A stretch of DNA of 64,000 nt, taken from IMG/VR virus record IMGVR_UViG_3300025319_000005, positions 1-64,000 of that record; one strand, written 5' to 3'. Position numbers and translations under genes: made by a program. Positions within the stretch are counted from its first letter, which is position 1. Every line of letters begins with the position of its first letter. Under the pieces are notes generated by a model that saw only the letters and a list, made by a program, of their open reading frames with translations, made no database searches and was not told where the DNA came from. This document shows, in pieces, positions 6,960-63,611 of this stretch.

Positions 6960-8066
6960 TTAAGACAACACAGATTCAAATACATTCCTATTAGCTTTGA
7001 TAATGGATTTAAGCTCTGATTTTCCACGATGTATTGTTGCTTTTATTGTTCCCAAAGGAATATTAAGCTCTTCTGCGATTTCGTTATAGGATTTCTCTTC
7101 AACAAAACGTTTATTCATAATAATACGGCAATTTTCTCCCAGTTTATTTACCGCCTTATTTATTAAAGATTTTTTTTGCTCTGTAATTAATATTTCTTCT
7201 GGATTAAGTGTTCCATCATCTTTCACATCAAATGAAGAATATTCATCCCCTTCGTTTCTCATTTTCTCAGAAGAAACTCCAGCACTCAAAGAAATTGTTT
7301 CCAATCTTTTTTTACGTGTGTAATCAATTAAAAAATTAGAAGCAATACGGCTTATCCAGCTATTAAACGTAAACGTCGGTTTGTACTGGTGAAGTTTTTC
7401 GAACACTCTAACGAATAACTCTGCAGTTAGGTCATCTGCCAAATCTTTATCAAATTTTAAACTTGAAGTATATTTATAATTTATTATAGCATAATAACGT
7501 TTATATAAAACAGAAAATTTTTCTTTTTTTCCAGATAAAATTTCATTTACAGCGTTAATATCTTCTTGATCTATTTTAGAAAAAACTTTTGTAGCAACAG
7601 AATTTTCTTTCGTTGCGACTTCTTTAATTATTTGTTCAACTTCTGTTACGGTTAAAACTTCCTCTGGTTTAGTTAAAACTTCTTTAAGAACCGGTTTAAC
7701 TTCTTTTTCAGGAGTAACAGTGCTGGATTTTGCAGGTTTAACCAATTTATTGATTTTATAATTTTTTTCTTTAGAAGAAGCAAATGTAACTTCAATCAAT
7801 TTATTTAATGAATTAATTCCTGACTTTAAACAATAACCCAAAAAAACTATGTTTTCTCCACTTAAATTTAAAATATCAACTATTCCAATTCTATCATTCG
7901 ATATTTTTTTAGCACCTGATTTTGATGGGTATGACCAATCTTTCCCTTTTCGCATAGCTTTGGTAAGTGGAAATACTCTTACGTTTAACTTATCATTTTT
8001 TACTTTCCCCATTAAAGAATATAATGGAGCCAATTTGATTGCTGAAATTTTTCCTGTGTTTTTCAT
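6960..8066 (-). CDS. ECF (sigma-70 group 4) RNA polymerase sigma factor with ~160-aa N-terminal extension
   Basis: Region 2 (DLTAELFVRVFEKLHQYKPTFTFNSWISRIASNFLIDYTRKK) and region 4 (KRFVEEKSYNEIAEELNIPLGTIKATIHRGKSELK), SigW/RpoE-like. Confidence 0.9.
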   Translation of the reverse strand: MKNTGKISAIKLAPLYSLMGKVKNDKLNVRVFPLTKAMRKGKDWSYPSKSGAKKISNDRIGIVDILNLSGENIVFLGYCLKSGINSLNKLIEVTFASSKEKNYKINKLVKPAKSSTVTPEKEVKPVLKEVLTKPEEVLTVTEVEQIIKEVATKENSVATKVFSKIDQEDINAVNEILSGKKEKFSVLYKRYYAIINYKYTSSLKFDKDLADDLTAELFVRVFEKLHQYKPTFTFNSWISRIASNFLIDYTRKKRLETISLSAGVSSEKMRNEGDEYSSFDVKDDGTLNPEEILITEQKKSLINKAVNKLGENCRIIMNKRFVEEKSYNEIAEELNIPLGTIKATIHRGKSELKSIIKANRNVFESVLS

Positions 8067-9058: not shown

Positions 9059-9463
9059 TTTAGATTGTTTTGAAGTTTACAATTTATAATTTCTCTTGTT
9101 TCTACATTTTTTTGAACAATTTGTATATGAATTCTTGCGTTATCCTTTCCATTCCATTTAACCTTCAAACCATTTCTTTCAAGTACATCAACAATTTCTT
9201 TACCTTTACCAGACCAAGATAGATAACATCCTTGACTTTCTTTTAAAGAATCTAAATCTTGATTATGATAAAAAATCACTTTATCATATTGTACATCTGG
9301 GACATCTGACCACCCACAAGAATTACAACAAGTATGATTCTCTTTAGCAAAATAACCCAAAGCTCTTAATTCATTAAAAGCATTTTTAATTGGAGCCCGG
9401 AATGAAAATTCTTTTTTTTCTGATTTAACTTTACCTTTTTTAATGATGTATAATTTCTGTTTA

Positions 9464-9500
9464 TAATGTACTATACAAGAAAAAATTGAGAGGTGTTACA
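9464..9500 (-). promoter_or_regulatory. ECF-type phage promoter copy 3
   Basis: TGTAAC-N17-TGTATAGTACATTA. Confidence 0.8.
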
Positions 9501-9518
9501 AATTCACTAATTTTTTAA

Positions 9519-10001
9519 TTATGCTATTGATAATTTGCCATTCATTGTTTTTACTATTTGTTCCAACGGAGATTCTATTTTTTGAATTATAGTATTATTA
9601 ATTAAACTTTGAGATTTTATGTAATCATTCTTTTTATTTTGATAATATATTTTTTGCTTATTATTTAAAATTAATCTTTTTTCTTTAATTTTTTCTCTTT
9701 GTTGTTTTAATACTAATCCACAAACTCCTTTGTATAATAAATTTAATCCACTATTTAAACAATCAAATAATTTTATGTAATATGATTCAGCATCATCCAA
9801 TTTTTCTTTTTCGCAAATATGTATTATTTCAAAAATGTGGTTCTCGTATTTATATTTTTTTAAAGAGTTATATAGTTGCCTTTGACCTTTACAATTATAT
9901 AACTTATAAGCATTCCATCTTTTTTCTATATTTATAGATTTACCTATATAAATTTTTCCGTTTGGTGATGTTATTTTATAGATTCCACAAGTTTGTTTCA
10001 T
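9519..10001 (-). CDS. GIY-YIG endonuclease
   Basis: CGIYKITSPNGKIYIGKSINIEKRW; E..YI..F; start overlaps the recombinase stop (ATGA). Confidence 0.85.
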   Translation of the reverse strand: MKQTCGIYKITSPNGKIYIGKSINIEKRWNAYKLYNCKGQRQLYNSLKKYKYENHIFEIIHICEKEKLDDAESYYIKLFDCLNSGLNLLYKGVCGLVLKQQREKIKEKRLILNNKQKIYYQNKKNDYIKSQSLINNTIIQKIESPLEQIVKTMNGKLSIA

Positions 10002-10855
10002 AAATGAATATTACTAATAGGAGACGCAATTTTACTTATTAAATTATGTGAAATATGAGTGTAAATTGAAGTTGTTTTTACAGAAGAATGACCTAACAAT
10101 TTTTGAATAAGATTTATATCGACACCATTTTCAACCATATGAGTAGCTGATGTGTGTCTCATTAAGTGAGTATAAACTCTTTTGTTATCTATCCCGGCTT
10201 TCTTTGCCAATTGTTTAATTACATTACCAACGCTGTGTTCGGAATATTGTTCAGCATTATTTTGTCCAGTTAAAACATAAACAAACTGGTCTTTTTTTAT
10301 ATTGTACTCTTTGCAATAGTCTTTTAATATTATAATCAATTGTTCATTTAATCCAACTTGACGGTCTTTATTTCCCTTTGCTTGAATTACATTTATAATC
10401 ATTCGGCTCCGGTCAATGTGTTCCCATTTTAAATTTAATAATTCTGAAACCCGGAGGGAACAAGAATAAAGTAGGGCAAGAATCACTTTATGCTTTTTGT
10501 TTTCGCAGGCGTCAAACATTCGTTGGATTTCATTTACAGATAAAACAATCGGCAGTTTTTTGTTTTTCCTTGGACGTTCTATGTATTTGAATTTTTCAAT
10601 TCCGACCCTTGCAATTTTTTCATAATAAATTTTAATAGCTGAATGGTATCCTGAATGTGTTGATGGTTCCTTAAACTGACCAAGAAACTCAATTATCATT
10701 GTGGTATTAATTCTGTCTGGGTGCGTTACCCCTTTCTTTTCAAAATAAGCAAGAAATCCAGTGAAGTTGCTACAATAGTTAGAAACTGAATTTGGCGAGT
10801 AATTTCGGAACTCCATATAATTTCGGAGCTTCTGTACTGGGTCTGAAATTTCCAT
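9998..10855 (-). CDS. Tyrosine recombinase/integrase (XerD-like, N-terminal SAM-like domain)
   Basis: Catalytic R (SLRVSE), K (AKGNKDR), HxxRH (HLMRH), LLGHS and Y (TSIYTH) all intact. Confidence 0.95.
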   Translation of the reverse strand: MEISDPVQKLRNYMEFRNYSPNSVSNYCSNFTGFLAYFEKKGVTHPDRINTTMIIEFLGQFKEPSTHSGYHSAIKIYYEKIARVGIEKFKYIERPRKNKKLPIVLSVNEIQRMFDACENKKHKVILALLYSCSLRVSELLNLKWEHIDRSRMIINVIQAKGNKDRQVGLNEQLIIILKDYCKEYNIKKDQFVYVLTGQNNAEQYSEHSVGNVIKQLAKKAGIDNKRVYTHLMRHTSATHMVENGVDINLIQKLLGHSSVKTTSIYTHISHNLISKIASPISNIHL

Positions 10856-10908
10856 GTCTAAATGTATTGATTTTATTAATACTTCAATAAGTGTGCCACA
10901 TATATAAT

Positions 10909-10915
10909 GTTATGT
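10909..10915 (-). mobile_element. Lone attC R''-like half site / attI-like junction
   Basis: ACATAAC on the - strand, preceded by the same GAGTGCGGTGGC-TTTT flank seen before the full hairpins; no matching arm. Confidence 0.4.
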
Positions 10916-10964
10916 TCAATTGTTTGTTGTTTAATTTTAAAAGCCACCGCACTCCTTTGTTTTT

Positions 10965-11795
10965 TCAAAACAATAAAAGGTTTGGTTTGTACTCATTAAT
11001 TCTGTTTGTCGCTAATTCAAAATATTCCTGTTTCTTTTCCATAATAATATAATTCCGCTTTAAGTTTTTACACACAACTCCAACCGTTCCACTTCCGCCA
11101 AACGGGTCCAACACAACATCGTTTTCATTAGTAAATGTTTTCACAAAAAACTCAACCAACTTTTCGGGGAATACTGCACTATGTTCCATCTTTGAAGTAA
11201 ATTGGTTTGTTACATTATTTGCGTTAATAACATTTGAAGGTCGTGCAAATTCAATGTCCTTAAAATTATCTCTATCCACTACCATTCCGCTTCCGTTGGT
11301 TGGTGTTTTACAATTCTTTCTAAATGCCCTGCTTTTTGTTTCCTCACTTACAGTTGTTCCACAAGCAAGTGCATTAAATGTAATTTGGTTTGGATTGTCT
11401 TTTGTAAAATGATACACAGGCTCAAATCCGTTTTTCATTCTCCCTTTCGTTCCAGTTGGGAAAGCATTTTTTGTCCAACAATATTCTTCCACAAACATAA
11501 ATCCCGTTTCTCTTTTCAGTCGGCAAATCAAATCATAAACATACAGGCTTCGTTCTCCTTTATTGGTGTGTGGCTTTATATTTAAAAAGAAACTTCCAGT
11601 AGGTTTTAAAATCCTTTTTATCTCTGCTCCAATAGGTAAAAACCAATCAATATATTCATTCTCGTTTGTACCTTCGTATGTTGCCTTTCTGCGTTCAGCA
11701 TAAGGCGGTGATGTAAAAACCAAATCAATACTATTAGTATCAATGGTTTTCATCAATTCTAAACAATCTCCTAAATAAACTTTATTGCTTTCCAT
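10965..11795 (-). CDS. N4-cytosine/N6-adenine DNA methyltransferase (beta class)
   Basis: FTSPPY catalytic motif, H.AVFP, VLDPFGGSGT SAM motif. Confidence 0.92.
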   Translation of the reverse strand: MESNKVYLGDCLELMKTIDTNSIDLVFTSPPYAERRKATYEGTNENEYIDWFLPIGAEIKRILKPTGSFFLNIKPHTNKGERSLYVYDLICRLKRETGFMFVEEYCWTKNAFPTGTKGRMKNGFEPVYHFTKDNPNQITFNALACGTTVSEETKSRAFRKNCKTPTNGSGMVVDRDNFKDIEFARPSNVINANNVTNQFTSKMEHSAVFPEKLVEFFVKTFTNENDVVLDPFGGSGTVGVVCKNLKRNYIIMEKKQEYFELATNRINEYKPNLLLF

Positions 11796-12140
11796 TAATC
11801 AACCGATATTGAAAGTATGCCCTTTCTTCCGTGTTTCACAAGTTCTTCTCCATCTTCATAAGCAACGGATAAGTGATGATTTTCATCAAGTATTTCTTCC
11901 TTATCAAAATCAATTATTCCATCAGGCAATTCATAAATATCATCTTCTTTGATAATATCTAACTGTTCCTGAGTTAATGGTTCTTTCAATTCGTAACGAA
12001 CCTTTACTGTTTTTGTAACATCAATGTAATTTTTCATATTATATTTATTTTATAGTTATTAATAAAAAGCCAACACACGCCACCTTTTTTTAAAATTAAA
12101 CAACAAACAACTGCCCCTCGCTCGAAAACCCTACGCACCA

Positions 12141-12221
12141 ACATAACACAGGCTACACGCAATAGCCCCACAAGCCCTCACACATCCAAAGCTACTGCAA
12201 GTGTAGCCCCGTCCGTTAGTT
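12141..12221 (-). mobile_element. attC-like hairpin 1
   Basis: - strand AACTAAC...GTTATGT ends; GCTACAC/GTGTAGC and GCA(A)TAGC/GCTA(C)TGC arms. Confidence 0.7.
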
Positions 12222-12288
12222 GCTATTTGTTTTCTTAAAATTAAAAGGCTCACGCTCGCTTAATTTTTTGCAAAAATTTAAAAGGTTA

Positions 12289-12819
12289 CTAACCTCCACT
12301 CATTGGTGTTGTATCAACTGAATAAAATCTCGGATAAGGTGATGTGTTCAAATCTAGCATGAACTTTAAATCAACTAATTTGTCTGGCAAAGTGGAAGGT
12401 ATAATTAAATAAAATTTCCATTTATCTTCTTCATTTATACTTCCTCGTTGCAAAAATAACTCACGTAAATTCCCAATATTTATAAATTGTATTTCTGTAA
12501 TAATTAACTTTTGGTCAATTTCTATTTTAAATTTTGTTTTAAATTTTGTATTCTTTATGTTTTTTTGAACACATACAAATTCCAAATTTTGACAATCTGG
12601 CTGAGAAAGGTCTATAAATTCATTCTCAGCAACTACTTTATCTTCCCACCTTTTAGGACGATTAATGCACTCTATTGTGTAATAGTCGTTATCAGCACCT
12701 ATTATTCTTTTCAATTGTGCAATCGTTATAATTGGCTTCACAAAGTAATTATTTCCATCAATTTTTATTCTAATATCCATAGTATCTTTTCCATCCTTTA
12801 ATTTGTTTATAATTATCAA
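12289..12819 (-). CDS. Tandem multi-ubiquitin (Ubl beta-grasp) domain protein ending in Gly-Gly
   Basis: Two repeats of I.ID...ITxAQL...D..V...E.IDLS.P..F / FKIEID...LREL...PDKLV..DL...RFYS; C-terminus SGG. Confidence 0.7.
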   Translation of the reverse strand: MIIINKLKDGKDTMDIRIKIDGNNYFVKPIITIAQLKRIIGADNDYYTIECINRPKRWEDKVVAENEFIDLSQPDCQNLEFVCVQKNIKNTKFKTKFKIEIDQKLIITEIQFINIGNLRELFLQRGSINEEDKWKFYLIIPSTLPDKLVDLKFMLDLNTSPYPRFYSVDTTPMSGG

Positions 12820-13006
12820 TGTAGTGAAATCCGTTATCTCGTTTTTTCACTAACTGTTTTTTTTCGTTTCCATTTTCATAAATAGCTATAAACTCAAACC
12901 CTTCATCGTTCGGTAAATAACTAACTGGATAAAATTTGCTAACACACGCCATCTCTTTTTGTTTATTTATTTTTTACTGCCTCACGCTCGAAGGGCTTAC
13001 GCACCA

Positions 13007-13084
13007 ACCTAACACCATGTTGGTCGTAAGTTTGCAACGTACTAACCGCTTAGGCAAACCTACGCCAACATTTGTACGTTGTAC
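13007..13084 (-). mobile_element. attC-like hairpin 2
   Basis: - strand GTACAAC...GTTAGGT (perfect GTTRRRY); ATGTTGG(T)CGTAAGTTTGC pairs with GCAAACCTACGCCAACAT, one extrahelical base. Confidence 0.75.
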
Positions 13085-13735
13085 GCAAGGTTTAAAAATA
13101 AAGGATCACGCACTTCTTAAAGTTTTTCAAACTTTTAAGAGATTTTAATCCGTTTACGTTTTGTTTCCCAATCTTTCTCTCCAATTATTTTAGCCGATTT
13201 ATAAATTCGGTTTTCTTTGTCAGCGCAAACATACATTCTGCAATGTGGTTTATCCGAATAATGCCCCTTTACAGCCATCACAGGAAAGTATTGCGTTTCT
13301 TCCATTACAACAACGTGATACATATATTGTTTTCGTTTTCCAATCATAAAATGAAACACTTTTAATAAATCACCAATCAATATCTGTTTACCAGTTTGGT
13401 CGTAGTACGTATTATCTTTCAACTTTTCTAAATATTCTTTCATAATTAGTTCCATTTAAAAGGGTTTGTATAATCAATCTCTTTCCAAAAACCAACAACG
13501 CCAAACATCACAATACCTACTATTATTATCAAAACAATAGTAATGTAACTAAGTGGATTATATGGATTAAATCTTCTTGCTGTTGAATATCCTTTACCTA
13601 AGTGAGGTGTTCTTTTTTTATTTGATACTTCCTGTAGAATGAAAAGGAATTTTAATATATTTTTCATAATTTGTTTTAAAATGTAAGTACTATGTTTTCT
13701 GCCTCCACACGCCACCATTTATTTTTAAACCCAGC

Positions 13736-13823
13736 GTACAACACCAAATAGGACGCAAGGCTACCTAACTGCTTACTATTCATTACGCTTATACGCCCTG
13801 TCGCCTATTTTTGTACGTTAAAA
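13736..13823 (-). mobile_element. attC-like hairpin 3
   Basis: - strand TTTTAAC...GTTGTAC; AAATAGG/CCTATTT arms; shares the TTTGTACGTT end with hairpin 2. Confidence 0.6.
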
Positions 13824-14017
13824 ATCTCCAACTCATTATTTATATGGTGTTTTCGCCAATACTCTTTTTATCATTTTAATACTTTTCATCACTTGCCTGT
13901 CTGCACAAGTTTGTCCTTCAACTTTTCTGCTTCCAAGAATATTGGCAACTATCCTCAAAGTATCTTCTATTTGTTCGGCTTCAAACTTGTGTATTATTAA
14001 TTCTTCCATTTTTTGTT

Positions 14018-16343: not shown

Positions 16344-16363
16344 TATATATTTTGTTTTGGTTA

Positions 16364-16400
16364 TAATGTACTATACAAAAAATAATTGAGAGGTGTTACA
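16364..16400 (-). promoter_or_regulatory. ECF-type phage promoter copy 5
   Basis: Consensus match upstream of 16343. Confidence 0.8.
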
Positions 16401-16412
16401 AGTAAAGCGTAA

Positions 16413-16700: not shown

Positions 16701-17902
16701 CGTAAAATATTTTTCAAAAACTTAACTGACATTTAACATAGTATTGTAGACTGTACGAAAAGCACAGCTACAATACTTTTTCGTTATTTTTTTAATTTAC
16801 AAGACATTTTTTCCTTCAACACTACAGCAAGTCTATTTCTATCATCATCGTCCGGAACTAATCCATTCCATAATTTAAGTTCATTACAAGTTTTTCTTAC
16901 TGCTTCGTTCCAGATTTCTTTTTCTTTTTTAGTTAAAATTTTCATAATTTATATTTTTTAATTTTAGAACCACGTTCCCCTTTTAATGCTATTCCGAGAG
17001 ATTTTGCCACAGATTCTATTGGTGCAACATGGTGATGATTATCACATTTATCCCACATATCCTGTAATCTTTCAGTATACACATCAATAGATTCTTCAAT
17101 GGGTTCGATAGTAACTTTGTATTTTTTGATTTTTACCATTCCGTTAAAACATGTTGGAATAGTTCTTGTCATATTGGTTATTTCGTGAGCTCCAAATGTA
17201 TTGAACGTTTCAAATGAAATAGTCTTATTTGTTTCTTCCGGTATTTTTTTATTTTTGGCCATTGTATGTGTTTTTTATTTAAAGTATTTTTTAAATTCTG
17301 GAACTTCTCTTTCTGCATCAGAAATTTCTGCCCATTTAATCACAAAACAAGATTTTGGATCTTTATCCATAATCAACCACCTTCCTTCATCTAAAAAATG
17401 TTTTCCCATTCTATATGAACCATAGTATTCATTTTCCGTTGCGGTTAATACATGGACAGCACCACATCCATAAGGAAGTTTTTCCTCTACTGAAATCCAG
17501 TTTCTATCTTTTTTCATTGATAATTTCAATCAGTTAACATTTCAGCAAGAACTCTGTATCTTCCTGTTAAATCTATGCTTCTTATTGACAGGTCTGTCGC
17601 TTTTAGATTTCTATTGAATTTTAACTCTCTTGAATAAAAAGCTTCAAGCGATACATCACCTATGATATAAGCACATTCATCATTCAAAATAAACTGAGCA
17701 CAACGCCTGGCTATATCCATAGCTGTTTCCCTATCGCACTCTAAAATTTCCAAGATAGTTTTATATCCTTTCTGTAATCTATTCGCAGGAACCGGATTTC
17801 CCATTGCGTTCCATCCAGAAAGATTTTGTTTATTAATGGATGTTGGAACGATTGGTCTTTGTCTTTCAATGTGTTTATTGTTTCTCATGATGTTTTGTTT
17901 TA

Positions 17903-17939
17903 TAATGTGCTATACGAAATTTAAATGGGAGGTGTTACA
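17903..17939 (-). promoter_or_regulatory. ECF-type phage promoter copy 6
   Basis: TGTAAC-N17-CGTATAGCACATTA. Confidence 0.8.
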
Positions 17940-18192
17940 AATATACTAAAAAACCGTAAACTTCAAATCAAATAAATCTGATTGGTTGATTTTTTCAAAT
18001 GTTTTTAAGTTTTCAAACATTTTAATAGCATCACTTTCTTTTTCAAAATCACGGCCAATACCAAAATCATCAGTACTCCAGACAGCTACTCGAAATTTAC
18101 CATCACTTAGCTCGCCAATGTATTTTAATTCTAATTGGCTATTTCCGTACAAACCATCATCGGTATTTTTTGAAATATTTGTTCTTTTCATT

Positions 18193-19289: not shown

Positions 19290-19329
19290 GATGTTTAATT
19301 TTTAAATTTATAATTAAATTGTTTGTTTA

Positions 19330-19366
19330 TAATGTACTATACGAAATTTAATTGATAGGTGTTACA
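19330..19366 (-). promoter_or_regulatory. ECF-type phage promoter copy 7
   Basis: Consensus match; the TAA of TGTAAC is the stop of ORF 19362-19760. Confidence 0.8.
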
Positions 19367-20264
19367 AATTATGTGTTTTAGCGAATTTTTCATTTTGTTC
19401 TTTCAATATATCACCTGTACGGCTTTTTGAATTTTTTAAATACCAATCAAATTGAGATTTTAATTTTTCCTCAAATGTTTTAGAAACTTCATCATCACAA
19501 CAATTTGGGTACATTTCTTTTTTAATATATTCATGATTAGTTACTCCAGTTGTTGACCAAACTTCATATTTTCCACCTACATTAAACTTGAATTCGGGTT
19601 TATTAAAAGTTACTCCAGCATATGTGTTTACTGCAAAATGATGAGATTTTACTTCATCGCCCTCCTTAAAGCGAGTTCCAAAAAAAGGTCTTGAAATCCA
19701 ACTTCCTGCCGTAACATACAAACCTAAGTGGTCTTTTTTTATTTTAGTTTTCTGTGCCATAATTACAAATTATTTACAAAATTTGAACTTTTCTCCTTTT
19801 AAATTGTATTCCTTATCATGTATTACTTTAATTGAATCAGCTATGGATTTTTGTTTTGCATATTCTTTTTCTTGAATTGGCGCTAATATGTTTAAATTTA
19901 TAGCTTTATAAACCTCATATGAATCATCTAAATTAAGCAGGAGTGTATCTTTTAAATTAAATAAAGAAACAGATACAGCATTATCACAACGAATTTTCAC
20001 ATTACATGTTTTATTCTCTATTGTTATTTTGTATAAATCTATTACACTGAAAATAAGCGAATCTGGAGTTTGAATTCTTTTCCAATCGCTTGAGTGCCAT
20101 ACAATGTTTTGACATATAGACTCTACAAATGTAAGAGGTTCATTTTTTAAGGATTTTAATTGTCCATTGTAATATAACACAAAAATTATGGTAGAAGGAA
20201 TTGAAATTGCGATTATAATTAATCTTATTAGAGGTATGCGTTTCATGGTTTTAAGTTTTGATTA

Positions 20265-20301
20265 TAATGTACTATACGAAATTTAAATGAGAGGTGTTAC
20301 A
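20265..20301 (-). promoter_or_regulatory. ECF-type phage promoter copy 8
   Basis: TGTAACACCTCTCATTTAAATTTCGTATAGTACATTA. Confidence 0.85.
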
Positions 20302-20308
20302 AAAATCA

Positions 20309-20542: not shown

Positions 20543-21361
20543 TTATAATTTAAAAACTAATTACTTTATCAAATTCTAATGTTGCTCCAGTAATTTTCAT
20601 TTTGTCCATAATTCCTTCAGCAACAATTATATTGGGAGCTGTAATTTTATCATAAAGACTTCCTTCTCGGATTACTCTATAAATATTTTTTCCTTCATCT
20701 GATGCTGGAACAAATTCACTGTCAAAATAAACATGTTTTACTCCACCGATTAACTGAATAATTTCTTCAGGTTGTGCGTTGAATCCACTTCTATTTTTTT
20801 TAATGAATTTTGCAAGGTTAGCCATTTTTTGAATATACTTAGCATTATCCGTATTGACGACGAAGTTCATTGCATACCAAAGATAATTGTCTTTATCTAC
20901 GACATTCATTTGGAAAGTTATTTCACCTATAGGTTCAAGGTATCTTGCACCTTTATAACGTTCAGTTAAAATTTGGATACACATGTGCTTGTATACTTCA
21001 TTTTTATTGGTCGATTCCTGAATTCTGATTTTAGTTTTCATCTGTAAGTTTTTTAATTTAATCCCGCAACAGGAATATATATTTTAATCATATCCTCAGA
21101 AATAATCACCGGCATCATTTTATGTTCTTTGTACCATATGTTTGTAATGTAAATCTTTTTATCTTCAATTTCTTCTATAGAAACAATTTTATATGTTTCG
21201 GATGGCAATTCATAAGGAACGCTAACTGATTTTCCATAAGAAACCTTCATTTTTATAACCTTAGTTATGAGGGTTCCAATTACCGGCATTTTTGTTACAT
21301 CCTTGTTTTTCATAAGTAATTATTTTGTTGTAATGTACTGCCATTAGGCATATGTTATTTA

Positions 21362-21398
21362 TAATGTACTATACAAAAAATAATTGGAAGGTGTTACA
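21362..21398 (-). promoter_or_regulatory. ECF-type phage promoter copy 9
   Basis: Consensus match upstream of 21313. Confidence 0.8.
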
Positions 21399-21411: not shown

Positions 21412-21556
21412 GGTAATAAGATTGCTGTTAATTGCGGCGTCGAACCGCCCCTCTGAACTTATGAAACGTCAAAACAGAAGAAAAAACGTTAGGCTTATAG
21501 CGACAAACTCTCAGCGGAAACCTACCCCTTTCCTATCTCAACAGCAACTTATTACC
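21412..21556 (-). ncRNA. Candidate structured RNA with a tRNA-like T arm
   Basis: 17-bp terminal inverted repeat GGTAATAAG(A)TTGCTGTT/AACAGCAACTTATTACC; GCGG-TTCGACG-CCGC hairpin; GC-rich intergenic island. Confidence 0.4.
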
Positions 21557-21608
21557 GATATCTTTGTTTAATTGTTTAAAAGTACGTTTAAAATACAAAA
21601 TCAGCATT

Positions 21609-23763: not shown

Positions 23764-24635
23764 TTTTTAAACACGGTTAAATTCAGCTCTAATTTTATCG
23801 CCAACGTTTTTTTCATATCGCTCCAATCCTTCTTTGTAAACGCTTTCATTTTTTGTGGTTCCAAAAAGATGTAGCAATAATTCCTTTGCAAATTCATCAG
23901 AAGAAATCAATCCACAAAAATCAATGCTTGTTTTACCTTGAATTTCAGATATTGCTGACCTTCTTGTATCGTGTGAGCCGGAAAGAATTTTAACTCTATC
24001 ATCACCGGCTGGACCAACACTTAATGTAATTGCAGAATACCAATAAACCAATCCGCCATAATTTCCATAACAAATTGGTTTAATAAACCAAATATCATCT
24101 ATAATAGGAAAATGATATGATAACTCCGGATATTTTGATATTGGTTCATATCCGTGTTTTAAAGGATCAAATTTATATTTTGCCATCTGCTGTATTGTTT
24201 TTTTGTTTAATGTCTGAAAATTTTCTTTCAAACTCTTCTTCATCAGCTATGTTGATTAATGTTTTTTCTAAAGACAAAAGCTCTTCTTCTATTTCTTGTC
24301 TATTCAATGCACCTTTTATTTGTAGCGCAAGTTTTCGCTGAGCTATTTCTTGCTTTATTATTTTTTTTGCTTTTTCCATTTTTGTTTAAATATTGTTTTT
24401 ATTCAGCATAGTCACGGCAAACACATTCATAATCATACATCGTTGCATATAGAAGTTCAAACTTCTCTGGATCTTCGTTTGTTTTACCTGTTTCAAGATA
24501 TGAAATAGTTATATCATGTTCAAAAGTATCTTGATTTCTTTTCGAAAACAAATCCCTTTCTTTTTTTAAAGCAATAATCAATTTTGCTTTTTTTTCGTCA
24601 ATTACTGAGTTTTCCATAATATTGATTTGATGTTA

Positions 24636-24672
24636 TAATGTACTATACGAAATTTAAATGAGAGGTGTTACA
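24636..24672 (-). promoter_or_regulatory. ECF-type phage promoter copy 11
   Basis: Consensus; encodes the VTPLI* end of ORF 24654-25052. Confidence 0.85.
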
Positions 24673-25955
24673 ATTTTTGCTTTCTCATGATTAATCTGAA
24701 AATAAGTTGTTAAAAGAAGTTCTATTTCTTTTGCCTTGTCGAGTATTTTTTCTTGAATAATTTGTTGAAATTTATCATAATTTTCCGGAATAACTTCATT
24801 ATGCCAGCTATGCTTCCACTGACCCATATCAATAGCCATTTTAATTAAATCTTTTAATGGGTCACTATTATTTAATTTGTTGGAATAACTCAATTTAAAA
24901 CCATCAATTATAAGTTCATCTTTACCAGTAAAAAAAATATTTATCTCAATTTTCTTTACCTTTCCTTCAACGTTGTTACTTCTGATAGAAATTCCAAGCT
25001 CGTTAAGTTTGTCTGTGAATTCTAAGTGTTTCATAAATTCTGGATTTTTCATAATTATTTTTTTAAATCAAAATGATTTACAAAAAATTCTGTACTTAAT
25101 ATTCCTTTAGCAATATCGTAAGATTTTTTCGGACAAATTAATTTACCGTTTCTTTTTATGCAAACCTCTGCTGTGCTTTTCCAACCAAAAACTCCACCCT
25201 CACCAAGAACATTAATAACTTGCTGAAAATATTTCTCATTTTCTTTAATTTGTTGCGTAGTTAAATTCATGATTTTTTGTTTTTAGGATTATAGTGAGTC
25301 CCATCAACCAAAGACACGCCATGCTTTATTCCGGCAATAAAATCATCAAGACTATAACCCATCTTTTTTTTTACTTATGTGCTTTCCAATTAAAAAGCCT
25401 ATTTCATTACCAATGTCCGATAAGTCCAGATTGACGTCACCATCAAATTTTTTATTAAAAGCAGATAGTCCCTTTATTATTTCTGTTGTTGTATCTTTGT
25501 GATTTTCCATGTTTATTCTTTTTTTGACATTAATTTCATATTGTCGTTTATTGCCTCAGTCATATCCAGAATAGCCTGGTTATAAGCAATGCACGCTCTA
25601 CGATATTTGATGTTGTTCTCGATTATCTTATCAGAGTTATCAGCTACGTTCTTAAAAGCCTCCATTATCTCAAAAGGATTATTGAACATATTCATGTTGC
25701 TGAATTTTTCGAAAGTATTTTCCATGGTTAATTATTTTTTGTTTCTATATTTTATTTGTTTTATGTTCTTTAGACTTTAAACGTTCCAGCTTTTGAGCAA
25801 TTTCAATACAATCGTCATTTAAGATGTTATAATACATAGCACCTCCCATTTTATTCCTTTGTAAAATAGCTTCAGCCAAGTTTTTTTCACCATCTTCTAC
25901 AGTCGTAAAGTTGGCCAAATTTTGTAAGTAGTTCATGTCGTTTAGTTTTAAATAA

Positions 25956-26944: not shown

Positions 26945-27666
26945 TTACAACTTTAATAAGTTTAGTGTCGTTATTTCCATAAGTTGAGCCTCTTTCTCCG
27001 CTTTTCTTTGGAGTTAAATCCTTTCTTAGTTCAAATCCATGATAAACCGGATCAACCACACCAAAAGAAACAGAAACAGTAATTTTATCAATTAACATTG
27101 TCCTTATGGTATCATTAATTATATCACCAACTTTATAAATGGCTTTGCTTAAACCATACTCTTGATAAAGAGCTCTCTTAGCCGATTCGTAATCAACATT
27201 AATCTGTTGTAATTTTTTATTATATTCTGCTTCTTCCATTTTTAACTAATTAAAATTATTCCTGCTATTAAAATATATAATCCTTGTAACCACATTGGGA
27301 TGAAACAGGTTGGAGTATCCTCATTAATAGTGAAAATGTTATAACCGAACACAATCCAAAGTAAATGAATTATAAATCCTACAAAAGGAATGAATGGTGA
27401 ATAATAAAGTAATTTTTTCATGTTTTAATTTTTCTATTTTATGTGTAAATGATTTAAAGCAAATTCTAAATCATCGTACAAATACTAATTTATAGCTCAT
27501 TACCTTCGGTACAGAAACATATTTATTATCAGGACCGGAAACGACAATTTTCTCTCCATATCTCCTTTTATGTTCTGCTTTAAGTGCAAGTATGATTTTT
27601 TTAACCAATTCCTTATCTAAAGGCTTTGGCTCAGTATTTTCAGGATTTTCCATGGTATTTGGTTTA

Positions 27667-27703
27667 TAATGTACTATACAAATTAAAATCGAGAGGTGTT
27701 ACA
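27667..27703 (-). promoter_or_regulatory. ECF-type phage promoter copy 12
   Basis: Consensus match. Confidence 0.8.
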
Positions 27704-28622
27704 ATTATTTCTTCTTTGCAGGTTTTTTCTTCTTTAATTTTGCATCTATTTCACTTGAGGTCATATATAAATAAATTCGCCTTACAAATTCACCATGTCG
27801 CACTTGTCCGTGTTTATCTACTGGACAAGTCAAATCAATTAGTCTTGATATTAAATCCCTATCTTGATTTTTTAAAGCTATCTTATTGTATTTATCCATC
27901 TTATCGCCCAACTTAACTGATAAGGCTTCAAATACTGCATAAGCATCTGCCACCGCATTTACTTGTGAAATGATACTGGCTTCCGTTTTTTTAGATAGTT
28001 TCATAGTTTTCATTTTATTGTTAAGCATGTCGTTTTTGATTTTTAGAAGGAGTTTTAGAATTTTCAGTTAAAAATTGCTCCAACTCATTAAGTAGTTCAT
28101 CACAATCGCATTTGTCTGATAATGCATCGTCTAATTCTTTCTGAGCATATTTTTCATCCTCGTCACTCTCTGGCTCTGCCAATGTTTTTATAAAAGGCAT
28201 AGTTGTTTCATCAAGCTCAGTATTGAGCTCTTCTCTTTTGTTTTTAATAAACGAAAGAATTTCTTCGTGCAAGTCTTCTACTTCCATATTTTTAGGATTT
28301 TATAGTGCTTCAAATTTTTTAATCCACTCTGCTTGTCTTTTCCTATCAACCTCATCTATACCATCTTTGTCAAGCGTCAATAATTCTTCAAGAGTATATC
28401 TTAATTTTCCATTTTTTTCGTCAATTTTGCATTGACATACAGACACTTCAATCGCTTCTTCAATACTCCTCGGATTTAAAGCTTGCAGTGTAGGTTCATA
28501 CTTGCCGGTTTTCTTATTAAAATAAGTCAAACCTTTTTCCCAAACAATTTGACGCTCAGCATTAAGCTTTATCCAAAGCTGCCGGTCAGATTCTGAATTA
28601 AAAAGTGATTTCTCTGTTTCCA

Positions 28623-56158: not shown

Positions 56159-57236
56159 ACGTTTGCAAATGTAGTAAATAATTATTTAGTTTAAACAAAA
56201 AGTCCAGTGATTATAATTTTTCACTGGACTTTCGTAGGGAGAATTAATCCTTCATCTTTTTGACTTTAACCTTTTCTTCGTCATCGTCATTTAAATAATC
56301 TTCCGCATCTTCGGTGTCATGACCATGTTTGTTCAGGCAGAAGAATTCTGGACCAGAACCAACTGCGAATAATCTTTCTACACAGGTTTTTACATCCATT
56401 ATTTCACTATCTGTTGTGATTGTAACGTCTCCAACATTATGACCTTCAGTTATGTCATAATTGATTTTTTCAAGGTCAGTTGAAGAATAAGGCTCCTCAG
56501 ATAAAATTTCAATTTGAACTACCGTCCGGTAGAATTTACGTTTACTTAATGACATGATGTTTTGTTTATTTGTGTTTAATTTATTTTTCTACTTCCTGTT
56601 TATAAATTTCAAGCATTTTATCTATTGCTTTATTCTCAACAGCATTTTTATTTGAGGATTTGTCAAAAATTCCTTTCAGAGCTATCTCTCCAACTTTTTT
56701 GCAAGGATAATATGTATCTTCACCTTTCGCAAGTTTTTCTCCGAACCGGTTTCCTTTTTGAGGCTCTTTTTGAAATCCTTTATACAATTCAAGAACCATT
56801 TTATCAAGATCAATTACATATGCGTATTCGCAAAAAAGAGAGTCTTTAATAAAATTAGTTCCATCCAGCATATGCTCAACTTTTCCTGACATTATTTCCG
56901 GTATATATTTTGCACCTTGTAATTCTCTTAATAAGGCATACCATTCTTCTGATTTGCCGGTTGATACACCACTATTAAAAAACTTATTGTATTTTTCCTG
57001 AATTAACTTTGATGGCTTTTTATTTTCATCTACAAGTTCAACTTTTTTACAATTCTTTTTGAACTGGTCCCAGCCATTGATTTCATCAATTTTCTGCAAT
57101 TCTATTACAACTTCTTCACCAACACCGCCGTCTGGATATCCATCAAATTGATTGTAAAATCCTTTGGCTTTTTCATCCTCAATGATTATAACTGCGCTTC
57201 TTGTTCCCATTTTATTTATGTGTTTTGGTTTATTTT

Positions 57237-57273
57237 ATAATGTACTATACGAAAATTAAATTAAGGTGTTACA
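57237..57273 (-). promoter_or_regulatory. ECF-type phage promoter copy 17
   Basis: Consensus match upstream of 57210. Confidence 0.8.
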
Positions 57274-57941
57274 AAATCAGAAGTAATGGGTGCGATTTTT
57301 TTGGTTATCGTTATCATTTATTTTGTGCAGTGAACCACTACTACATCTCACGTACTTCTTTTTTTAGTTGTTATTAAATTGATACTCAACATCTTCCTCG
57401 TCATAGAAAAATCCTTGATGTTCACAATCTTCCGGGTAAGGTAAAGAATCCCAAACTTTCTTCCAATTTTCTTTTGAAGGGAGATTCTCGACAAGTTTAG
57501 GAACTTTAAAGCCTCTATTTGCTACAACTGTTAAATTACATCCTCCATAGTCTTTCCATCCTTCTTTTATAAGTTGGTTTGCGGTTTTTCCTCCTTGAGA
57601 TGAAATTGGAGTCTCATAATTGTGAAAATCTTTTATATAAGCCAATTTAACTTTTCCATCTGTGATACCTCTTTCTGTAATTTTGCCGGAGAACACTTTT
57701 TTTCTTATATCGTCTGAGTTTTTACCGGTGATTCCATTCATTTCTCCAATGAGTGTATAAATATCTTTACCTCCAAACTCACCATAACCTCCATAATCTT
57801 CTTCTGTAAAAACCTGACCATCTTCTGTGATCATATGAACTTTAAAAGTTTCTCTAATTGATCCGGCATTAGGAATACTCTTTTGAGTATCCGATGTTTT
57901 AAAACTGAAATATCCCATAATATGTTTTTGTTTTTGATTTA

Positions 57942-57978
57942 TAATGTGCTATACAAATTTTAAATGAGAGGTGTTACA
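57942..57978 (-). promoter_or_regulatory. ECF-type phage promoter copy 18
   Basis: Consensus; encodes the VTPLI* end of ORF 57960-58967. Confidence 0.8.
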
Positions 57979-59193
57979 ACTTTGGATAATTTATTCGCAA
58001 ATACTTCATTGATTATTTCTTCAATGTATTCTTCTTCTTTTGTTAATGTTTCTTTACCGGATAGTTTTTGTTTGGCAACAATAAGCTTTTTTAAGTGTTC
58101 TTTGCTATTGTATTTTCCACCAATAGGGAGAAGTATGCCGAATCCTCCAAAAAGTATTTCTAATTCGTGTGTTGAACTCATTGTTCCTTCGTGAAATGAA
58201 GCTCCGTAAAGAATACAACAATTATATATTCCATTTAGATAATTCTCAATAGAAATCTTTTGTTCTTTTTTTGTACTTCCCTCAAGAGAATCTCCAAAGT
58301 GTCTTCCGTCAGAAGATGAAATCCAATTAAACATTCTATGGGAAGGAATCCCTCTTTTTCTTAATCCGGCTTCAATTTGTTTATCATTTACTGCAGTTCT
58401 CCCTGAAGAATGTCCAATCCATCCGTGAGCATATCCTTTTGAAACGTATTCTTTTAATTTTGGTGAGTTAAAAACTTCATCTGAAAACCCACCTTGATAT
58501 AATTTCGGATTTGCCGTTAAAATATCTAAATCCATCCAAAGAACCAATTTTTGTTTCTTTGCTTCCTTTTGAGATTTAATTTTTTCTCTTTCCCAGAAAG
58601 CTTTTTGTGCTGGTATGTTTCTGTCTTTTTTAAAACCTTTATCGTAATAGGATTTTACAAGAGAAATGAACTCTGAAGTGCTTTGAAACTCAGCATCCCG
58701 TCCGAATATCTTATTACTATGTAACCCTTTGTTATAGAACGTTTTATCAGCCTCAAGGTAAAATCCTACATATTTTGAGTCACCGTATATTTCAGCTATT
58801 GTTTCTCCGTTAAGTCCTGGAAATTTTTTGGATACGATTATTGAATTCAGTTCTATTTTGAAATCAATTTCTTTTGTATCGGTAACAATAACAAGAAATT
58901 CATCCATAGATGATGAAGACGCGAAACAAGAGTGAATGTGTTTAGTTATTACGATTGGCTTTTTCATTGTGTTTAGTTTTTAACCGGTTTGAATTCACAA
59001 AAATCTTCAAGGTCTCTTAAATCAATTCGACCAAATTTGACTGAGCTATAATAGCCTTGTCTTTCAAATCTCTTAACCCAATTTTTAAAAGCTTCAAGAG
59101 TTGCTTTTAACCCTGTGTATGTTTTACCCATATCAATAGAGATTCCATCTGGGGAGATTACATCATATTTTTTTGAGTTTTCCATTGTTTTCA

Positions 59194-61068: not shown

Positions 61069-61118
61069 AATTTCTAACGCCCTTTTGGGTGCGCCCTCAT
61101 TTAGTTAATACTGATTTA

Positions 61119-61155
61119 TAATGTACTATACAGAATTTAATTGATAGGTGTTACA
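61119..61155 (-). promoter_or_regulatory. ECF-type phage promoter copy 21
   Basis: Consensus match. Confidence 0.8.
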
Positions 61156-61226
61156 AAAACAGAAAACAAACATATCTGGTGTAAAATCCTAAAGCAAATA
61201 TATATACGCAAATTAAAACTATATTT

Positions 61227-62472: not shown

Positions 62473-63134
62473 AGGCAGTTATTAAAAATTTAGCTATGGC
62501 TTCCAATTCTTCTGCATGAATTAAAATCGAGCCATTACCTTCTGCTTTATCTACTTCCAAGCCAGTAGAACTTAAATGTCCTATTCGACTTCGTTGTCCA
62601 TCAATTGTTCTGAATATCCAGAAGTTTCCAACACCATCATCAATAAATTCAAGTTTATGATTTTTGAATACAGGGTTTTCTATTATTTTGGTTATTGTTT
62701 TCATGGCTTATTTTCTTTCGTTGATTACCTGATAAATTAAATCCTCAACCACAAGACTCCAATTTGCTGTTTCATCCTGGTTTTGAGCTGCCGGATACCT
62801 TTTTAATACTTCTTGAATTTCCGCGTCAGTCAGTTCTTTTTTTAATGAATCGGCGATTGTTTCGACATCTAAGTCAATTATTTCGTTTTCCATGTTGTTA
62901 AGGTATTGAAATTATAACTTTTGCTTCAGGGAGAAACTGAGGCGTTACTTCAACTTTGGTTGTGTAAAATTCAGCATCATCAGGAGCAAGTCCTTGATGG
63001 TCAGCAACATCCTGCAACCCTCCTGCAATGTTGTTAGTAATTGTTTTTATATCTTCATCAGATGTGATTTTATCTGAAAAGGTAAGTGTTACTAAAAATG
63101 TGTGTGTCTTACTCATGGCGTTATGTTTTGTTTA

Positions 63135-63171
63135 CAATGTACTATACAAGAAATAATTGAATGGTGTTACA
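63135..63171 (-). promoter_or_regulatory. ECF-type phage promoter copy 24
   Basis: Identical to copy 25 over more than 40 bp. Confidence 0.8.
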
Positions 63172-63378
63172 AATATTATTCGACTTGTAAAATCCTATCA
63201 AGAATCATTCTCTCAACATTCCCATTCTTTATTTTGTTCGCCCACATACCGGCAATTGCTATAAACTCATCCAATGTATCGGCTTCATCAATTTCTTCTG
63301 TTATTTGTTCTAAATCATCTCCCTCTAAGGTGATGGATTTTTTGTATTCTGATTTCAATTTGTCTAATGTCATAGCGT

Positions 63379-63555: not shown

Positions 63556-63574
63556 GATATTTTGTTTTTGTTTA

Positions 63575-63611
63575 CAATGTACTATACAAGAAATAATTGA
63601 ATGGTGTTACA
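63575..63611 (-). promoter_or_regulatory. ECF-type phage promoter copy 25
   Basis: TGTAACACCATTCAATTATTTCTTGTATAGTACATTG. Confidence 0.8.

Follow-up and report, generated by a model that had tools for sequence, protein, structure and literature searches.

Can a giant bacteriophage carry an integron-style gene shuffler that lacks the integron's own enzyme? The question is raised by a locus in the 64,000-nt stretch of DNA analysed here (the window), which belongs to a phage of ~0.5 Mb and in which three two-gene blocks, separated by hairpins, lie upstream of an intact tyrosine recombinase gene. The initial annotation, made from the sequence alone, interpreted this arrangement as a non-canonical integron-like shuffling system paired with a recombinase that lacks the IntI signature. 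All the sequence features on which that reading was based are present, and the reading itself is supported by our analysis, although catalysis by this recombinase and single-strand folding of the hairpins are inferred. The features of the locus are collected in Table 1.

Table 1. Positions of the features of the locus within the window. The vertical bar marks the crossover; the sequences of E0 and E1 are given on the gene strand.
Feature	Position	Strand	Description
GIY-YIG gene	9519-10001	-	Homing-endonuclease-like; overlaps the recombinase stop codon
Recombinase gene	9998-10855	-	Xer/XerA-like tyrosine recombinase, 285 aa; candidate cassette recombinase
Simple site E0 (attI-like)	10893-10917	.	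No hairpin; ...GAACATAAC|ATTATATATGTGGCAC; crossover within 10908|10909 to 10912|10913
Half site in E0	10909-10915	+	GTTATGT, reads ACATAAC on the gene strand; 53 nt upstream of the recombinase ATG
Cassette 1	10910-12215	-	Tail, N6_N4 DNA methyltransferase (10965-11795), 80-aa ORF (11795-12037), leader with TGGCGTGTG (12074-12082), 40-nt box (12110-12149), hairpin E1
Inverted repeat of cassette 1 ends	10917-10942 / 12088-12113		26 nt, 96%
Hairpin E1 (attC-like)	about 12129-12223	-	CAACTAAC|GGACG-stem-loop-stem-CTGTGTTATGTTGG
Cassette 2	12216-13078	-	Tail ending ...GCAACTAAC, 176-aa ORF (12289-12819), 60-aa ORF (12770-12952, its ATG inside the ATGGCGTGTG motif), box (12976-13015), hairpin E2
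Hairpin E2	about 12995-13086	-	Loop TAAGCGGTTAGTACGT
Cassette 3	13079-13817	-	Tail ...GCGTACAAC, 106-aa ORF (13135-13455), about 73-aa ORF (13446-13667), leader with TGGCGTGTG (13706-13714), hairpin E3; no 40-nt box
Inverted repeat of cassette 3 ends	13078-13102 / 13718-13742		25 nt, 92%
Hairpin E3	about 13730-13825	-	Outermost detected site of the array

The three hairpins are about 90 nt long and closed by AAC...GTT. They fold with z-scores of -2.4 to -3.6 against dinucleotide shuffles on both strands (-3.2/-3.6 for E1), and the folding is better on the minus, gene-sense strand. The hairpins are the three highest 80-nt GC peaks of the whole window (0.56, 0.53 and 0.48 against a mean of 0.296, sd 0.06). 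The GC enrichment of the region as a whole, noted in the initial annotation, holds only weakly at 1-kb scale (0.31-0.34 vs 0.29), the effect coming from the intergenic elements. A covariance model built from the hairpin family finds exactly these three copies in the window and no others, with 76.6, 60.9 and 37.6 bits for E1, E2 and E3, respectively. The motif TGGCGTGTG occurs exactly three times in the window, all three in these elements; if at most one mismatch is allowed, 10 matches are found against 2.5 expected. The 40-nt box TGGTGCGTA.G...TTCGAGCG.G.GGCAG is shared by hairpins 1 and 2.

The structure of the hairpins is conserved across many phage contigs. In an alignment of 19 hairpins from the window and at least 14 other contigs the AACG and GTGTT feet are invariant while the stems covary: 95.9% of cells are paired against 29–49% when the partners are slid, eight of 18 pairs show compensatory changes, and the covariation score is 0.41 against at most 0.10. 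G.T wobbles sit on the gene strand, the one that also folds better. The loop of E2 is shared with L053, whose stem differs, and a copy 88% identical to E3 sits in an alternative array path, contig L071 (3395-3491). It should be noted that the feet match the integron consensus RYYYAAC/GTTRRRY only at AAC/GTT.

The recombinase belongs to the tyrosine recombinases (PF00589, 4.9e-39) and has an intact catalytic set, with conserved R135, H230, R233, H256 and Y265 in A3. With the NCBIfam models XerA_Arch (195 bits), XerD (180) and IntI (166, in two stretches) all scores are below the cut-offs. The absence of the IntI-specific I2 insertion, as stated in the initial annotation, is confirmed by alignment with structures from the PDB: where VchIntIA has 65 residues (181-245), this protein has 27 (181-207). 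IntI1 spans 314 aa for 277 query residues at 26% identity. Since I2 is used by IntI to read the extrahelical bases of attC (PMC4792948), recognition of the hairpins would need another mode, or the reaction may be double-stranded. The recombinase subfamily is widespread in metagenomes (at least 120 clusters with at least 62% identity), but has no close relative (35% identity at most) among 50,697 deposited phage records. The GIY-YIG gene (PF01541, 1.2e-08; TIGR01453, 3.7e-19) is a neighbour and not part of the conserved module, as no homologue lies next to the recombinase in any relative for which this was compared.

Do the cassettes move as units? Natural strain variants with flanks 99.8–100% identical to the window show joints after ...AGCAACTAAC (window position 12215), where different sequences follow. 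In the window this is cassette 1. In the assembled empty-site contig L077 and in a contig of run X19 the same position is joined directly to ATTATATATG... of the recombinase leader, so that cassette 1 is missing as one 1306-bp unit; this joint (10908|12215) has 4 shared letters. The contigs L071, L090 and L039 carry a DUF1643 cassette series, contig L070 a further sequence, and a contig of run X1 an E3-like hairpin after 10 nt. Four different sequences follow the terminal TAAC of cassette 2 in different assemblies, and the partners share only 4–8 nt. Unitigs and a 63-kb contig end exactly at 12215 and 10912 (a unitig of run SRR3972141 starts at 10912), and contigs break at both feet of E1, 12215 and 12151. 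Cassette boundaries in strain variants and in relatives fall at the G|TT (AAC| on the gene strand) of the hairpins and of the half site. An exception is variant L061, which has the same methyltransferase cassette with a different hairpin, its breakpoint being at the other foot or within the shared box; homologous recombination in the box can explain it. The circle junction (cassette tail ...AACATAAC joined to GGACGGGG...) and the empty-site junction are absent from IMG/VR, and there is no biochemical evidence of an excised circle, nor any at the level of reads, only assembled contigs having been compared.

The simple site is conserved together with the recombinase. All 11 recombinase relatives examined (51–78% identity) have the same YAAC|ATWATATATGT site, which lies 50–53 nt before the ATG in 10 of 11. 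The neighbouring genes tested (the GIY-YIG, sigma-factor and cassette proteins) have no homologues in the eight of ten relatives covered by this comparison, and the site is nevertheless present. Ten have hairpin arrays on that side only. The AAC/GTT-closed hairpins counted on the recombinase's strand number about 27 upstream (23 in seven relatives, one more in L012 and the three in the window) against 3 downstream. However, the tails of the first cassettes also share a CAATTG motif, so conservation alone does not pin the crossover, and hairpin elements also occur on contigs where no recombinase was seen in the part retrieved.

The ends of the cassettes show the circular-permutation signature of integron cassettes. 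The 16 nt after the GTT of a hairpin are complementary to the tail of the same cassette rather than to the adjacent tail: the mean is 10.2 vs 7.0 matches, own exceeds neighbour in 17 of 21 cassettes from 7 arrays, and values reach 15/16. This is expected if cassettes cycle through a circular form. Joining the own ends roughly doubles the fold energy for 2 of the 3 cassettes of the window: -33.5/-36.2 against -16.5/-21.0 kcal/mol in the array for cassette 1, and -27.1/-32.3 against -16.0/-19.9 kcal/mol for cassette 3, whose R''/R' 9-mers match 9/9. Cassette 2 does not show own-end complementarity.

These data are, with moderate confidence, best explained by a phage-borne, integron-like cassette platform. 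It consists of the recombinase gene and a simple double-strand site about 50 nt upstream of it, with an array of cassettes on that side. On the gene strand each cassette comprises a hairpin (about 75–95 nt), often the conserved 40-nt box, an AT-rich leader, one to three small ORFs and a tail ending in (Y)AAC. We propose that site-specific recombination at the AAC| step, between two hairpin feet or between a hairpin foot and the simple site, excises a cassette as a circle in which its tail pairs with the flank of its own hairpin, and that the same reaction re-inserts circles and swaps cassettes between co-infecting phages. It is inferred that the adjacent Xer-like enzyme is the catalyst, that the hairpin acts as folded single-stranded DNA (gene-sense strand, cleaved in its 5' arm as in attC bottom strands), and that the box is the cassettes' own promoter or an accessory binding site. 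Such a system would supply and shuffle accessory genes, very often orphan DNA methyltransferases, which are probably anti-restriction cargo. DNA methyltransferases recur in the arrays, as reported for attC cassettes in phages (PMC9892861). The other cargo named in the initial annotation, a Ubl protein, rests only on a weak language-model lead (Multi_ubiq, score 0.73). The initial annotation also regarded the position of the recombinase, co-oriented and downstream of the array, as a departure from integrons. Relative to the polarity of the sites, however, the layout is the canonical one: the recombinase gene reads away from the array, the simple site sits next to it, and the hairpin of each cassette lies at its distal end. 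What is inverted is the ORFs inside the cassettes, not the platform.

It is possible, although unlikely, that the hairpin, box and leader are regulatory modules (a terminator or RNA-stability hairpin plus promoter and leader) analogous to the PeSLs of T4-type phages, that genes are shuffled by homologous recombination between them, and that the neighbouring recombinase is unrelated. Indeed, the modules lie between co-directional genes and extend to the start codon, the same ~190-nt module precedes unrelated genes in different contigs, and G.U wobbles on the sense strand fit an RNA structure equally well. Variant L061 can be made by a crossover inside the shared 45-nt box, a contig of run X10 has the ORFs of cassette 3 missing or replaced between the flanking G-rich motifs, and PeSL-mediated deletion and mini-circles are documented (PMC2839356, PMC4122927). 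On the other hand, no sigma-70-like promoter is found in the modules, promoter-like hits in the region are at chance level (14 vs 15.0 expected), and the ordinary ~45-nt promoter-like repeat of the phage is absent from the array. The hairpins have 20–30-nt loops and are not short GC terminators, and the repeated joints at TAAC| have only 4–8 nt of shared sequence. This view predicts neither the conserved simple site, nor the one-sided arrays, nor own-end complementarity.

Also unlikely is that the recombinase is an ordinary phage function, either an integrase with attP or a Cre/Xer-like multimer resolvase with a dif/lox-like site at E0, while the hairpins are unrelated palindromes which, with the 25–26-nt inverted repeats, stimulate replication slippage or illegitimate recombination. 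The enzyme is closest to XerA/XerD resolvases, the E0 region looks like a simple core site, and the 1306-bp deletion lies between short direct repeats at the base of a structure formed by E1 and the 26-nt inverted repeat, a geometry that favours slippage. But slippage explains one deletion and not several different sequences joined at the same phosphodiester window, nor the invariant feet with covarying stems, own-end complementarity across 7 arrays or the consistent co-location of arrays with this recombinase on one side. No integrated (prophage) form was found, the closest genome-collection hits being short MAG contigs with the same array layout. Least likely, the hairpin units may be non-autonomous single-strand transposable elements (IS200/IS605-, PATE- or MITE-like) that insert 3' of TAAC and are mobilised by an HUH or other transposase encoded elsewhere. 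The empty and filled sites do differ by an element that starts right after a flanking TAAC and ends in TAAC, as IS200/IS605 elements generally do with their target tetranucleotide, and a hairpin sits next to the cleavage point. However, no HUH/Y1 transposase was found in the cassettes or the region, only one end carries a hairpin, no copies occur elsewhere in the 64 kb, and the elements form ordered, one-sided arrays next to a tyrosine recombinase with a dedicated hairpin-less site.

Among known systems, integrons, in particular sedentary chromosomal ones, share with this locus a tyrosine recombinase of the Xer/IntI group next to a hairpin-less site with an array on one side, one imperfect AAC...GTT-closed hairpin per cassette with conserved structure and variable sequence, joints at G|TT (within 4 nt), cassette ends that are circularly permuted halves of one site, and sites homogeneous within a lineage, as VCRs are in Vibrio. 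In contrast to integrons, the recombinase lacks I2, the ORFs are antisense to the usual cassette orientation and read toward the recombinase, cassettes often hold two ORFs, most of them carry the conserved box, which together with a leader lies between hairpin and ORFs, outer stems of 16–26 bp extend beyond the crossover point, and the host replicon is a phage; the locus is thus not a canonical integron. It is nevertheless relevant to published speculation on a viral, Xer-like origin of integrons. attC clusters without integrase (CALINs) and integron fragments were described previously in virulent phage genomes, with several cassette-borne DNA methyltransferases including N6_N4_Mtase (Qi et al. 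2023, PMC9892861). Those sites were found with the bacterial attC models and were recombined by bacterial IntI1, and no phage-encoded non-IntI recombinase or attI-like platform was described, while here the sites come with a dedicated phage recombinase subfamily.

CTX-phi and other IMEX elements provide the published precedent that I2 is not required for hairpin substrates, as a Xer-type enzyme without I2 recombines a folded single-strand hairpin with a double-strand site (PMC4792948, PMC7790495). IMEXs hijack host XerCD to integrate a whole element at dif, whereas here the enzyme is phage-encoded and the substrates are many cassette sites within one replicon. The PeSL cassettes of T4-type phages likewise are repeated intergenic stem-loop modules that bracket small accessory ORFs in a plastic region of a large virulent phage and are associated with insertion, deletion and replacement of ORFs, but they are sigma-70 promoters plus short terminator stem-loops and recombine by homology. 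Finally, the pdif modules of Acinetobacter plasmids (PMC7399989) are bounded by Xer-type sites and are thought to move by Xer recombination. They use 28-bp double-strand dif-like sites in alternating orientation and host XerCD, and have no hairpins, no dedicated recombinase and no ordered array beside it.

The window is the first part of the IMG/VR contig 3300025319_000005 (212 kb), and the same sequence lies in a 503,412-bp NCBI assembly record, GCA_902731165.1. Its GC content is 29.6%, nearly all genes are on the minus strand, and most of them are small and without family matches. The standard genetic code fits, an alternative code being rejected. It is therefore a "huge" phage known only from metagenome assemblies, and the sequencing runs that hold this stretch are sediment, soil and groundwater metagenomes. 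A DNA search of deposited phage genomes gave a single 240-nt hit to a 636-kb uncultured phage. ARAGORN found no tRNA in the window, and Rfam gave nothing at gathering score or, on the array, at E<=1. A tRNA-3'-end-like look of the conserved box (…ACGCACCA) did not survive inspection.

The features described in the initial annotation, namely three hairpin elements separating two-gene blocks, a lone half site and a tyrosine recombinase followed by a GIY-YIG nuclease, are all present. The three intergenic elements hold the three highest 80-nt GC peaks of the window and fold significantly better than shuffled sequences on both strands, the gene strand being the better of the two. They share TGGCGTGTG, which occurs exactly three times, all in these elements, as well as a G-rich motif after the upstream gene and, in two of them, a 40-nt box. 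They separate three two-ORF blocks, in which only one ORF has a family match (an N6_N4 DNA methyltransferase). The 285-aa tyrosine recombinase gene and the GIY-YIG endonuclease gene lie downstream. The coordinates of these and of additional features are collected in the table.

Coordinates of features of the cassette locus, of the rest of the window and of related contigs
Sequence	Position	Strand	Feature
Window	10909	+	Half site GTTATGT, 53 nt before the recombinase ATG
Window	12215		End of the tail of cassette 2 (...AGCAACTAAC); end of unitigs of run SRR3972141 and of a 63-kb contig
Window	10912		Start of unitigs of run SRR3972141
Window	9998-10001		4-nt overlap of the GIY-YIG homing-endonuclease-like gene with the recombinase stop codon
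Window	6960-8066	-	Gene of a 368-aa sigma-70-family protein (Sigma70_r2/r4), 2 kb downstream of the recombinase
Window	12069-12084, 12938-12953, 13701-13716 and 10945-10957, 12246-12258, 13100-13113		Imperfect direct repeats of a G-rich motif bracketing the ORFs of each cassette: GGTGGCGTGTG.. before the ORFs and GAG(T/C)GCG(G/T)TGA.CC after them
Window	13120 to 13704		Joint in a contig of run X10
Window	9455-9501, 16355-16401, 17894-17951, 19319-19372, 20262-20304, 21355-21398, 24622-24673, 27656-27704, 57204-57277, 57925-57979, 61112-61158, 63126-63174, 63554-63614		~45-nt intergenic repeat family (…GTAACACCT.TCAATTATTTTTTGTATAGTACATTATAA…)
Window	21440-21560	-	GC-rich, ~140-nt non-coding stretch bounded by an inverted repeat (AAGTTGCTGTT / AACAGCAATCTT)
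L009 (also L010, L011)	10430-10432		In-frame stop in the recombinase homologue, at the invariant Trp of NLKW
L005	7625-7772		tRNA-Gln(CTG) and tRNA-Ile(GAT) genes inside the hairpin array
L051	56-149 and 1194-1927		Hairpin element and a distant, frameshifted tyrosine recombinase gene
L067	1-165		RHS/YD-repeat-like coding sequence fused to the middle of the 80-aa cassette ORF
L003	5594-5650		Right foot plus box without a hairpin

A pattern from the conserved right foot retrieved copies of the hairpin from other viral and metagenome contigs with unrelated flanking genes, and copies from 14 of these contigs entered the alignment. On the gene strand the order of elements is the tail of the upstream gene ending in (Y)AAC, then G, a stem, a 20-30-nt loop, the return stem, GTGTTA(T/G)GTTGG, a box, an AT-rich leader, a G-rich motif and the ATG. 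Nineteen copies align with invariant AACG and GTGTT feet. Their stems covary: 95.9% of cells are paired against 29-49% in slid controls, 8 of 18 pairs show compensatory changes, and no shuffle in 500 reaches the observed values on four of the five measures (3 of 500 on the fifth). The loops fall into three sequence types that can sit on different stems, G.T wobbles lie on the gene strand, and conserved unpaired positions flank the AAC/GTT box. Compared with integron attC sites (imperfect hairpins of about 57-141 nt with R'' RYYYAAC and R' GTTRRRY), the length, AAC/GTT feet and stem covariation agree, but the RYYY and RRRY positions are not consistently matched. A covariance model built from the family finds only the three copies in the window. 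It does not reach the diverged hairpins of the genome-collection (MAG) loci with more distant recombinases and gave, among the IMG/VR relatives, only weak hits in L006. A folding scan constrained by AAC/GTT was used for these loci instead, although it is crude and at -14 kcal/mol misses E1 and E3, the hairpins of cassettes 1 and 3.

The core evidence comes from natural variants. Public assemblies of the same phage population hold alternative arrangements whose flanks are 99.8-100% identical to the window. The tail of cassette 2 is followed in the window by hairpin E1 and the methyltransferase cassette. In a Logan contig of sequencing run X19 and in the independently assembled scaffold L077 it is followed directly by the recombinase leader ATTATATATG..., so that the whole 1306-bp cassette 1 is absent. 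In the assemblies L071, L090 and L039, from three samples, a different series of cassettes is found at this place (DUF1643, then an E3-like hairpin, then a type-C hairpin), whereas scaffold L070 has a further sequence and a contig of run X1 has an E3-like hairpin after 10 nt. The ends and starts of the SRR3972141 unitigs are those expected if both forms coexist in that run. The partners share only TAAC, or AAC-N-TAAC (4-8 nt), and on the + strand every joint lies within GTTA, compatible with G|TT. As the flanks on both sides of the simple site diverge equally among relatives, conservation could not be used to map the platform boundary, and the position of the crossover rests on the strain variants. 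The joints 9695|12467 and 13333->9638 were considered dubious and set aside, as was the contig L067, whose fusion is probably an assembly chimera. A second kind of breakpoint lies at the other foot of the hairpin: variant L061 has the identical cassette 1 and recombinase, but a different homologous hairpin and a different upstream gene, and several contigs begin at CTGTGTTATG. It is possible that this is a crossover at that foot, or homologous recombination in the shared box.

Judged from HMM scores and PDB alignments, the recombinase belongs to the Xer/IntI group of simple tyrosine recombinases. Its best PDB relatives are XerA, followed by IntI4 and XerD, and the catalytic set is intact, with R, H-x-x-R, H and Y conserved in six homologues. 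Notably, the additional I2 alpha-helix domain that IntI enzymes carry between patches II and III is lacking, in agreement with the initial annotation. The alignment to VchIntIA splits in two, with 27 query residues opposite 65 of IntI, and IntI1 is 26% identical with about 37 extra residues. TIGR02249 scores 166 bits in two stretches against a cut-off of 265, while XerA_Arch and XerD score higher. The subfamily is large (at least 120 clusters at 62% identity or more, all about 280 aa), but a protein search of deposited phage genomes gave nothing above 35% identity, and in the genome collection only two MAG contigs are close relatives. In three contigs (L009, L010 and L011) the homologue reads NLK followed by a stop, which is either stop-codon recoding (stop read as Trp) in that phage lineage or a shared pseudogene.

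Eleven loci with 51-78% identical recombinases were examined. The neighbouring genes tested (the GIY-YIG, sigma-factor and cassette proteins) have no homologue in the eight relatives covered by this comparison, and the GIY-YIG gene is probably a recent free-standing endonuclease insertion. All 11 loci nevertheless carry (G)CTAAC|AT(T/A)ATATATGT-like sites (YAAC|ATWATATATGT), located 50-53 nt before the ATG in 10 of them. Ten of the 11 have AAC/GTT-closed intergenic hairpins on that side, co-oriented, and almost none lie on the other side. A hairpin-less, attI-like site thus sits next to the recombinase gene with the array on its far side. A degenerate attI-like pattern was too unspecific to be used in IMG/VR searches. 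The arrays repeatedly carry DNA methyltransferases, three of them within 6 kb in the contig L290. The leads for other cargo (Multi_ubiq and DpnD/PcfM) are weak.

If cassettes pass through a circular form and are cut at AAC|, the tail of a cassette and the flank just after its own hairpin are two halves of one site, and they should be complementary to each other and not to the tail that happens to lie next to the hairpin in the array. This holds in 17 of 21 cassettes from 7 arrays, with mean matches of 10.2 of 16 for own tails against 7.0 for neighbours and several at 13-15 of 16 (our two-sided sign test on the 17:3 split gives p of about 0.003). It explains the 26-nt and 25-nt inverted repeats that bracket cassettes 1 and 3. 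Joining a cassette's own ends nearly doubles the predicted stability for these two cassettes, cassette 2 being an exception. However, no circle junction (cassette tail ...AACATAAC joined to GGACGGGG... of its own hairpin) was seen in the assembled variants, and neither this nor the empty-site junction gave matches in IMG/VR.

Read on the + strand, the locus has the canonical integron order: the recombinase gene points away, the simple site sits beside it, and each cassette's hairpin lies at its distal end with the crossover in the distal foot. In contrast to integron cassettes, which are mostly promoterless and whose ORFs read away from attI under a platform promoter Pc, all cassette ORFs of this locus read toward the simple site and the recombinase and are preceded by a conserved box and leader. 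The better-folding strand is the ORF-sense strand, and the joint lies in its 5' arm at AA(C)|, which appears to be the geometry of attC bottom strands (PMC4792948).

Regulatory-module, slippage and TIR-transposon models do not predict the own-end complementarity, and the observed deletion unit includes the hairpin core, which a TIR-bounded element would leave behind. PeSL regulatory cassettes (PMC2839356, PMC4122927) join a near-consensus sigma-70 early promoter to a short terminator stem-loop, but no promoter-like site is found in the modules, the hits are at chance level, and there is only one partial terminator-like match. Moreover, the ~45-nt repeat common in this phage, which reads like a sigma-70-type promoter (-35 GTAACA, extended TG, -10 TATAGT) and precedes many genes of the window, is absent from the array. 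Exchange inside a shared motif by homologous recombination is true or possible for variant L061, but does not hold for the TAAC| joints, which share 4-8 nt. For elements of the IS200/IS605 type or PATEs, an HUH (Y1) transposase or at least subterminal hairpins at both ends would be expected, whereas no such domain occurs in the region's proteins and there is one hairpin per unit. Invertible switches (invertons, shufflons) are not supported either: inverted repeats exist, but no strand-changing joint was seen in four runs, and all variants are deletions or replacements.

The interpretation of the initial annotation, a non-canonical integron-like shuffling system, is supported. The locus probably works like an integron, and site-specific cassette exchange at the hairpin feet by the adjacent enzyme is more probable than not, although the role of the enzyme is inferred from natural variants consistent with such events rather than from an assay, and the reaction may be either single- or double-stranded. 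It is not a member of the integron family as defined by IntI. Qi et al. (PMC9892861) reported attC sites, CALINs and a few IntI genes in phages, with methyltransferase cassettes, recognised by bacterial IntI1, but did not describe a phage recombinase of another subfamily with its own platform. PeSLs and pdif modules (PMC7399989) are the nearest non-integron analogues, and they differ from the present system. Full-text searches for attC-like or integron-like sites in phages found no description of it.

The origin of integrons, the textbook device for capturing and reshuffling genes, is open, and a viral origin and a Xer-like ancestor that lacked the I2 domain have been the subject of speculation (PMC4792948, PMC7790495). 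The present locus offers a concrete, widespread system of exactly that make-up, with an attI-like site, hairpin-bounded cassettes and natural cassette gain and loss, so the question becomes testable at the bench. A bolder and rather doubtful possibility is that these arrays are a natural "I2-less integron", in which a phage-encoded Xer-like recombinase would recombine folded single-stranded hairpin sites with a double-strand site, capturing and reshuffling counter-defence cassettes. Such a system would be either a surviving relative of the proposed viral, Xer-like ancestor or an independent invention of the same device. Independently of this possibility, the locus would show that large virulent phages run their own site-specific exchange of accessory genes, notably orphan DNA methyltransferases, which bears on how phages keep pace with restriction and other defences. 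It suggests as well that integron-finding software keyed on IntI misses a class of cassette platforms.

The sigma-70-family protein encoded near the recombinase could recognise phage-specific promoters, possibly the cassette box. The G-rich direct repeats bracketing the ORFs of each cassette have a counterpart in relative L006, where the same arrangement is found with a different motif (GGCGGCTGT / GGCTGTGGCTGTTGCCC). In the contig of run X10 the ORFs between the two motifs are missing or replaced, and it is possible that this represents a second, ORF-swapping layer. The GC-rich non-coding stretch, which lies just upstream of a promoter-like repeat and has no Rfam match, may be a small structured RNA. 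In contig L005 the two tRNA genes lie upstream of the recombinase homologue, next to a hairpin with the GGGTTTTCGAGCGATGG box. In L051 the hairpin element is followed about 1 kb downstream by the distant (38% identical) recombinase gene, a second, degenerate recombinase-hairpin pairing. Finally, in contig L003 a copy of the right foot plus box (45 nt identical to E1) directly abuts a stop codon upstream of a YopX-like gene, a truncated site showing that the box can persist without the hairpin.
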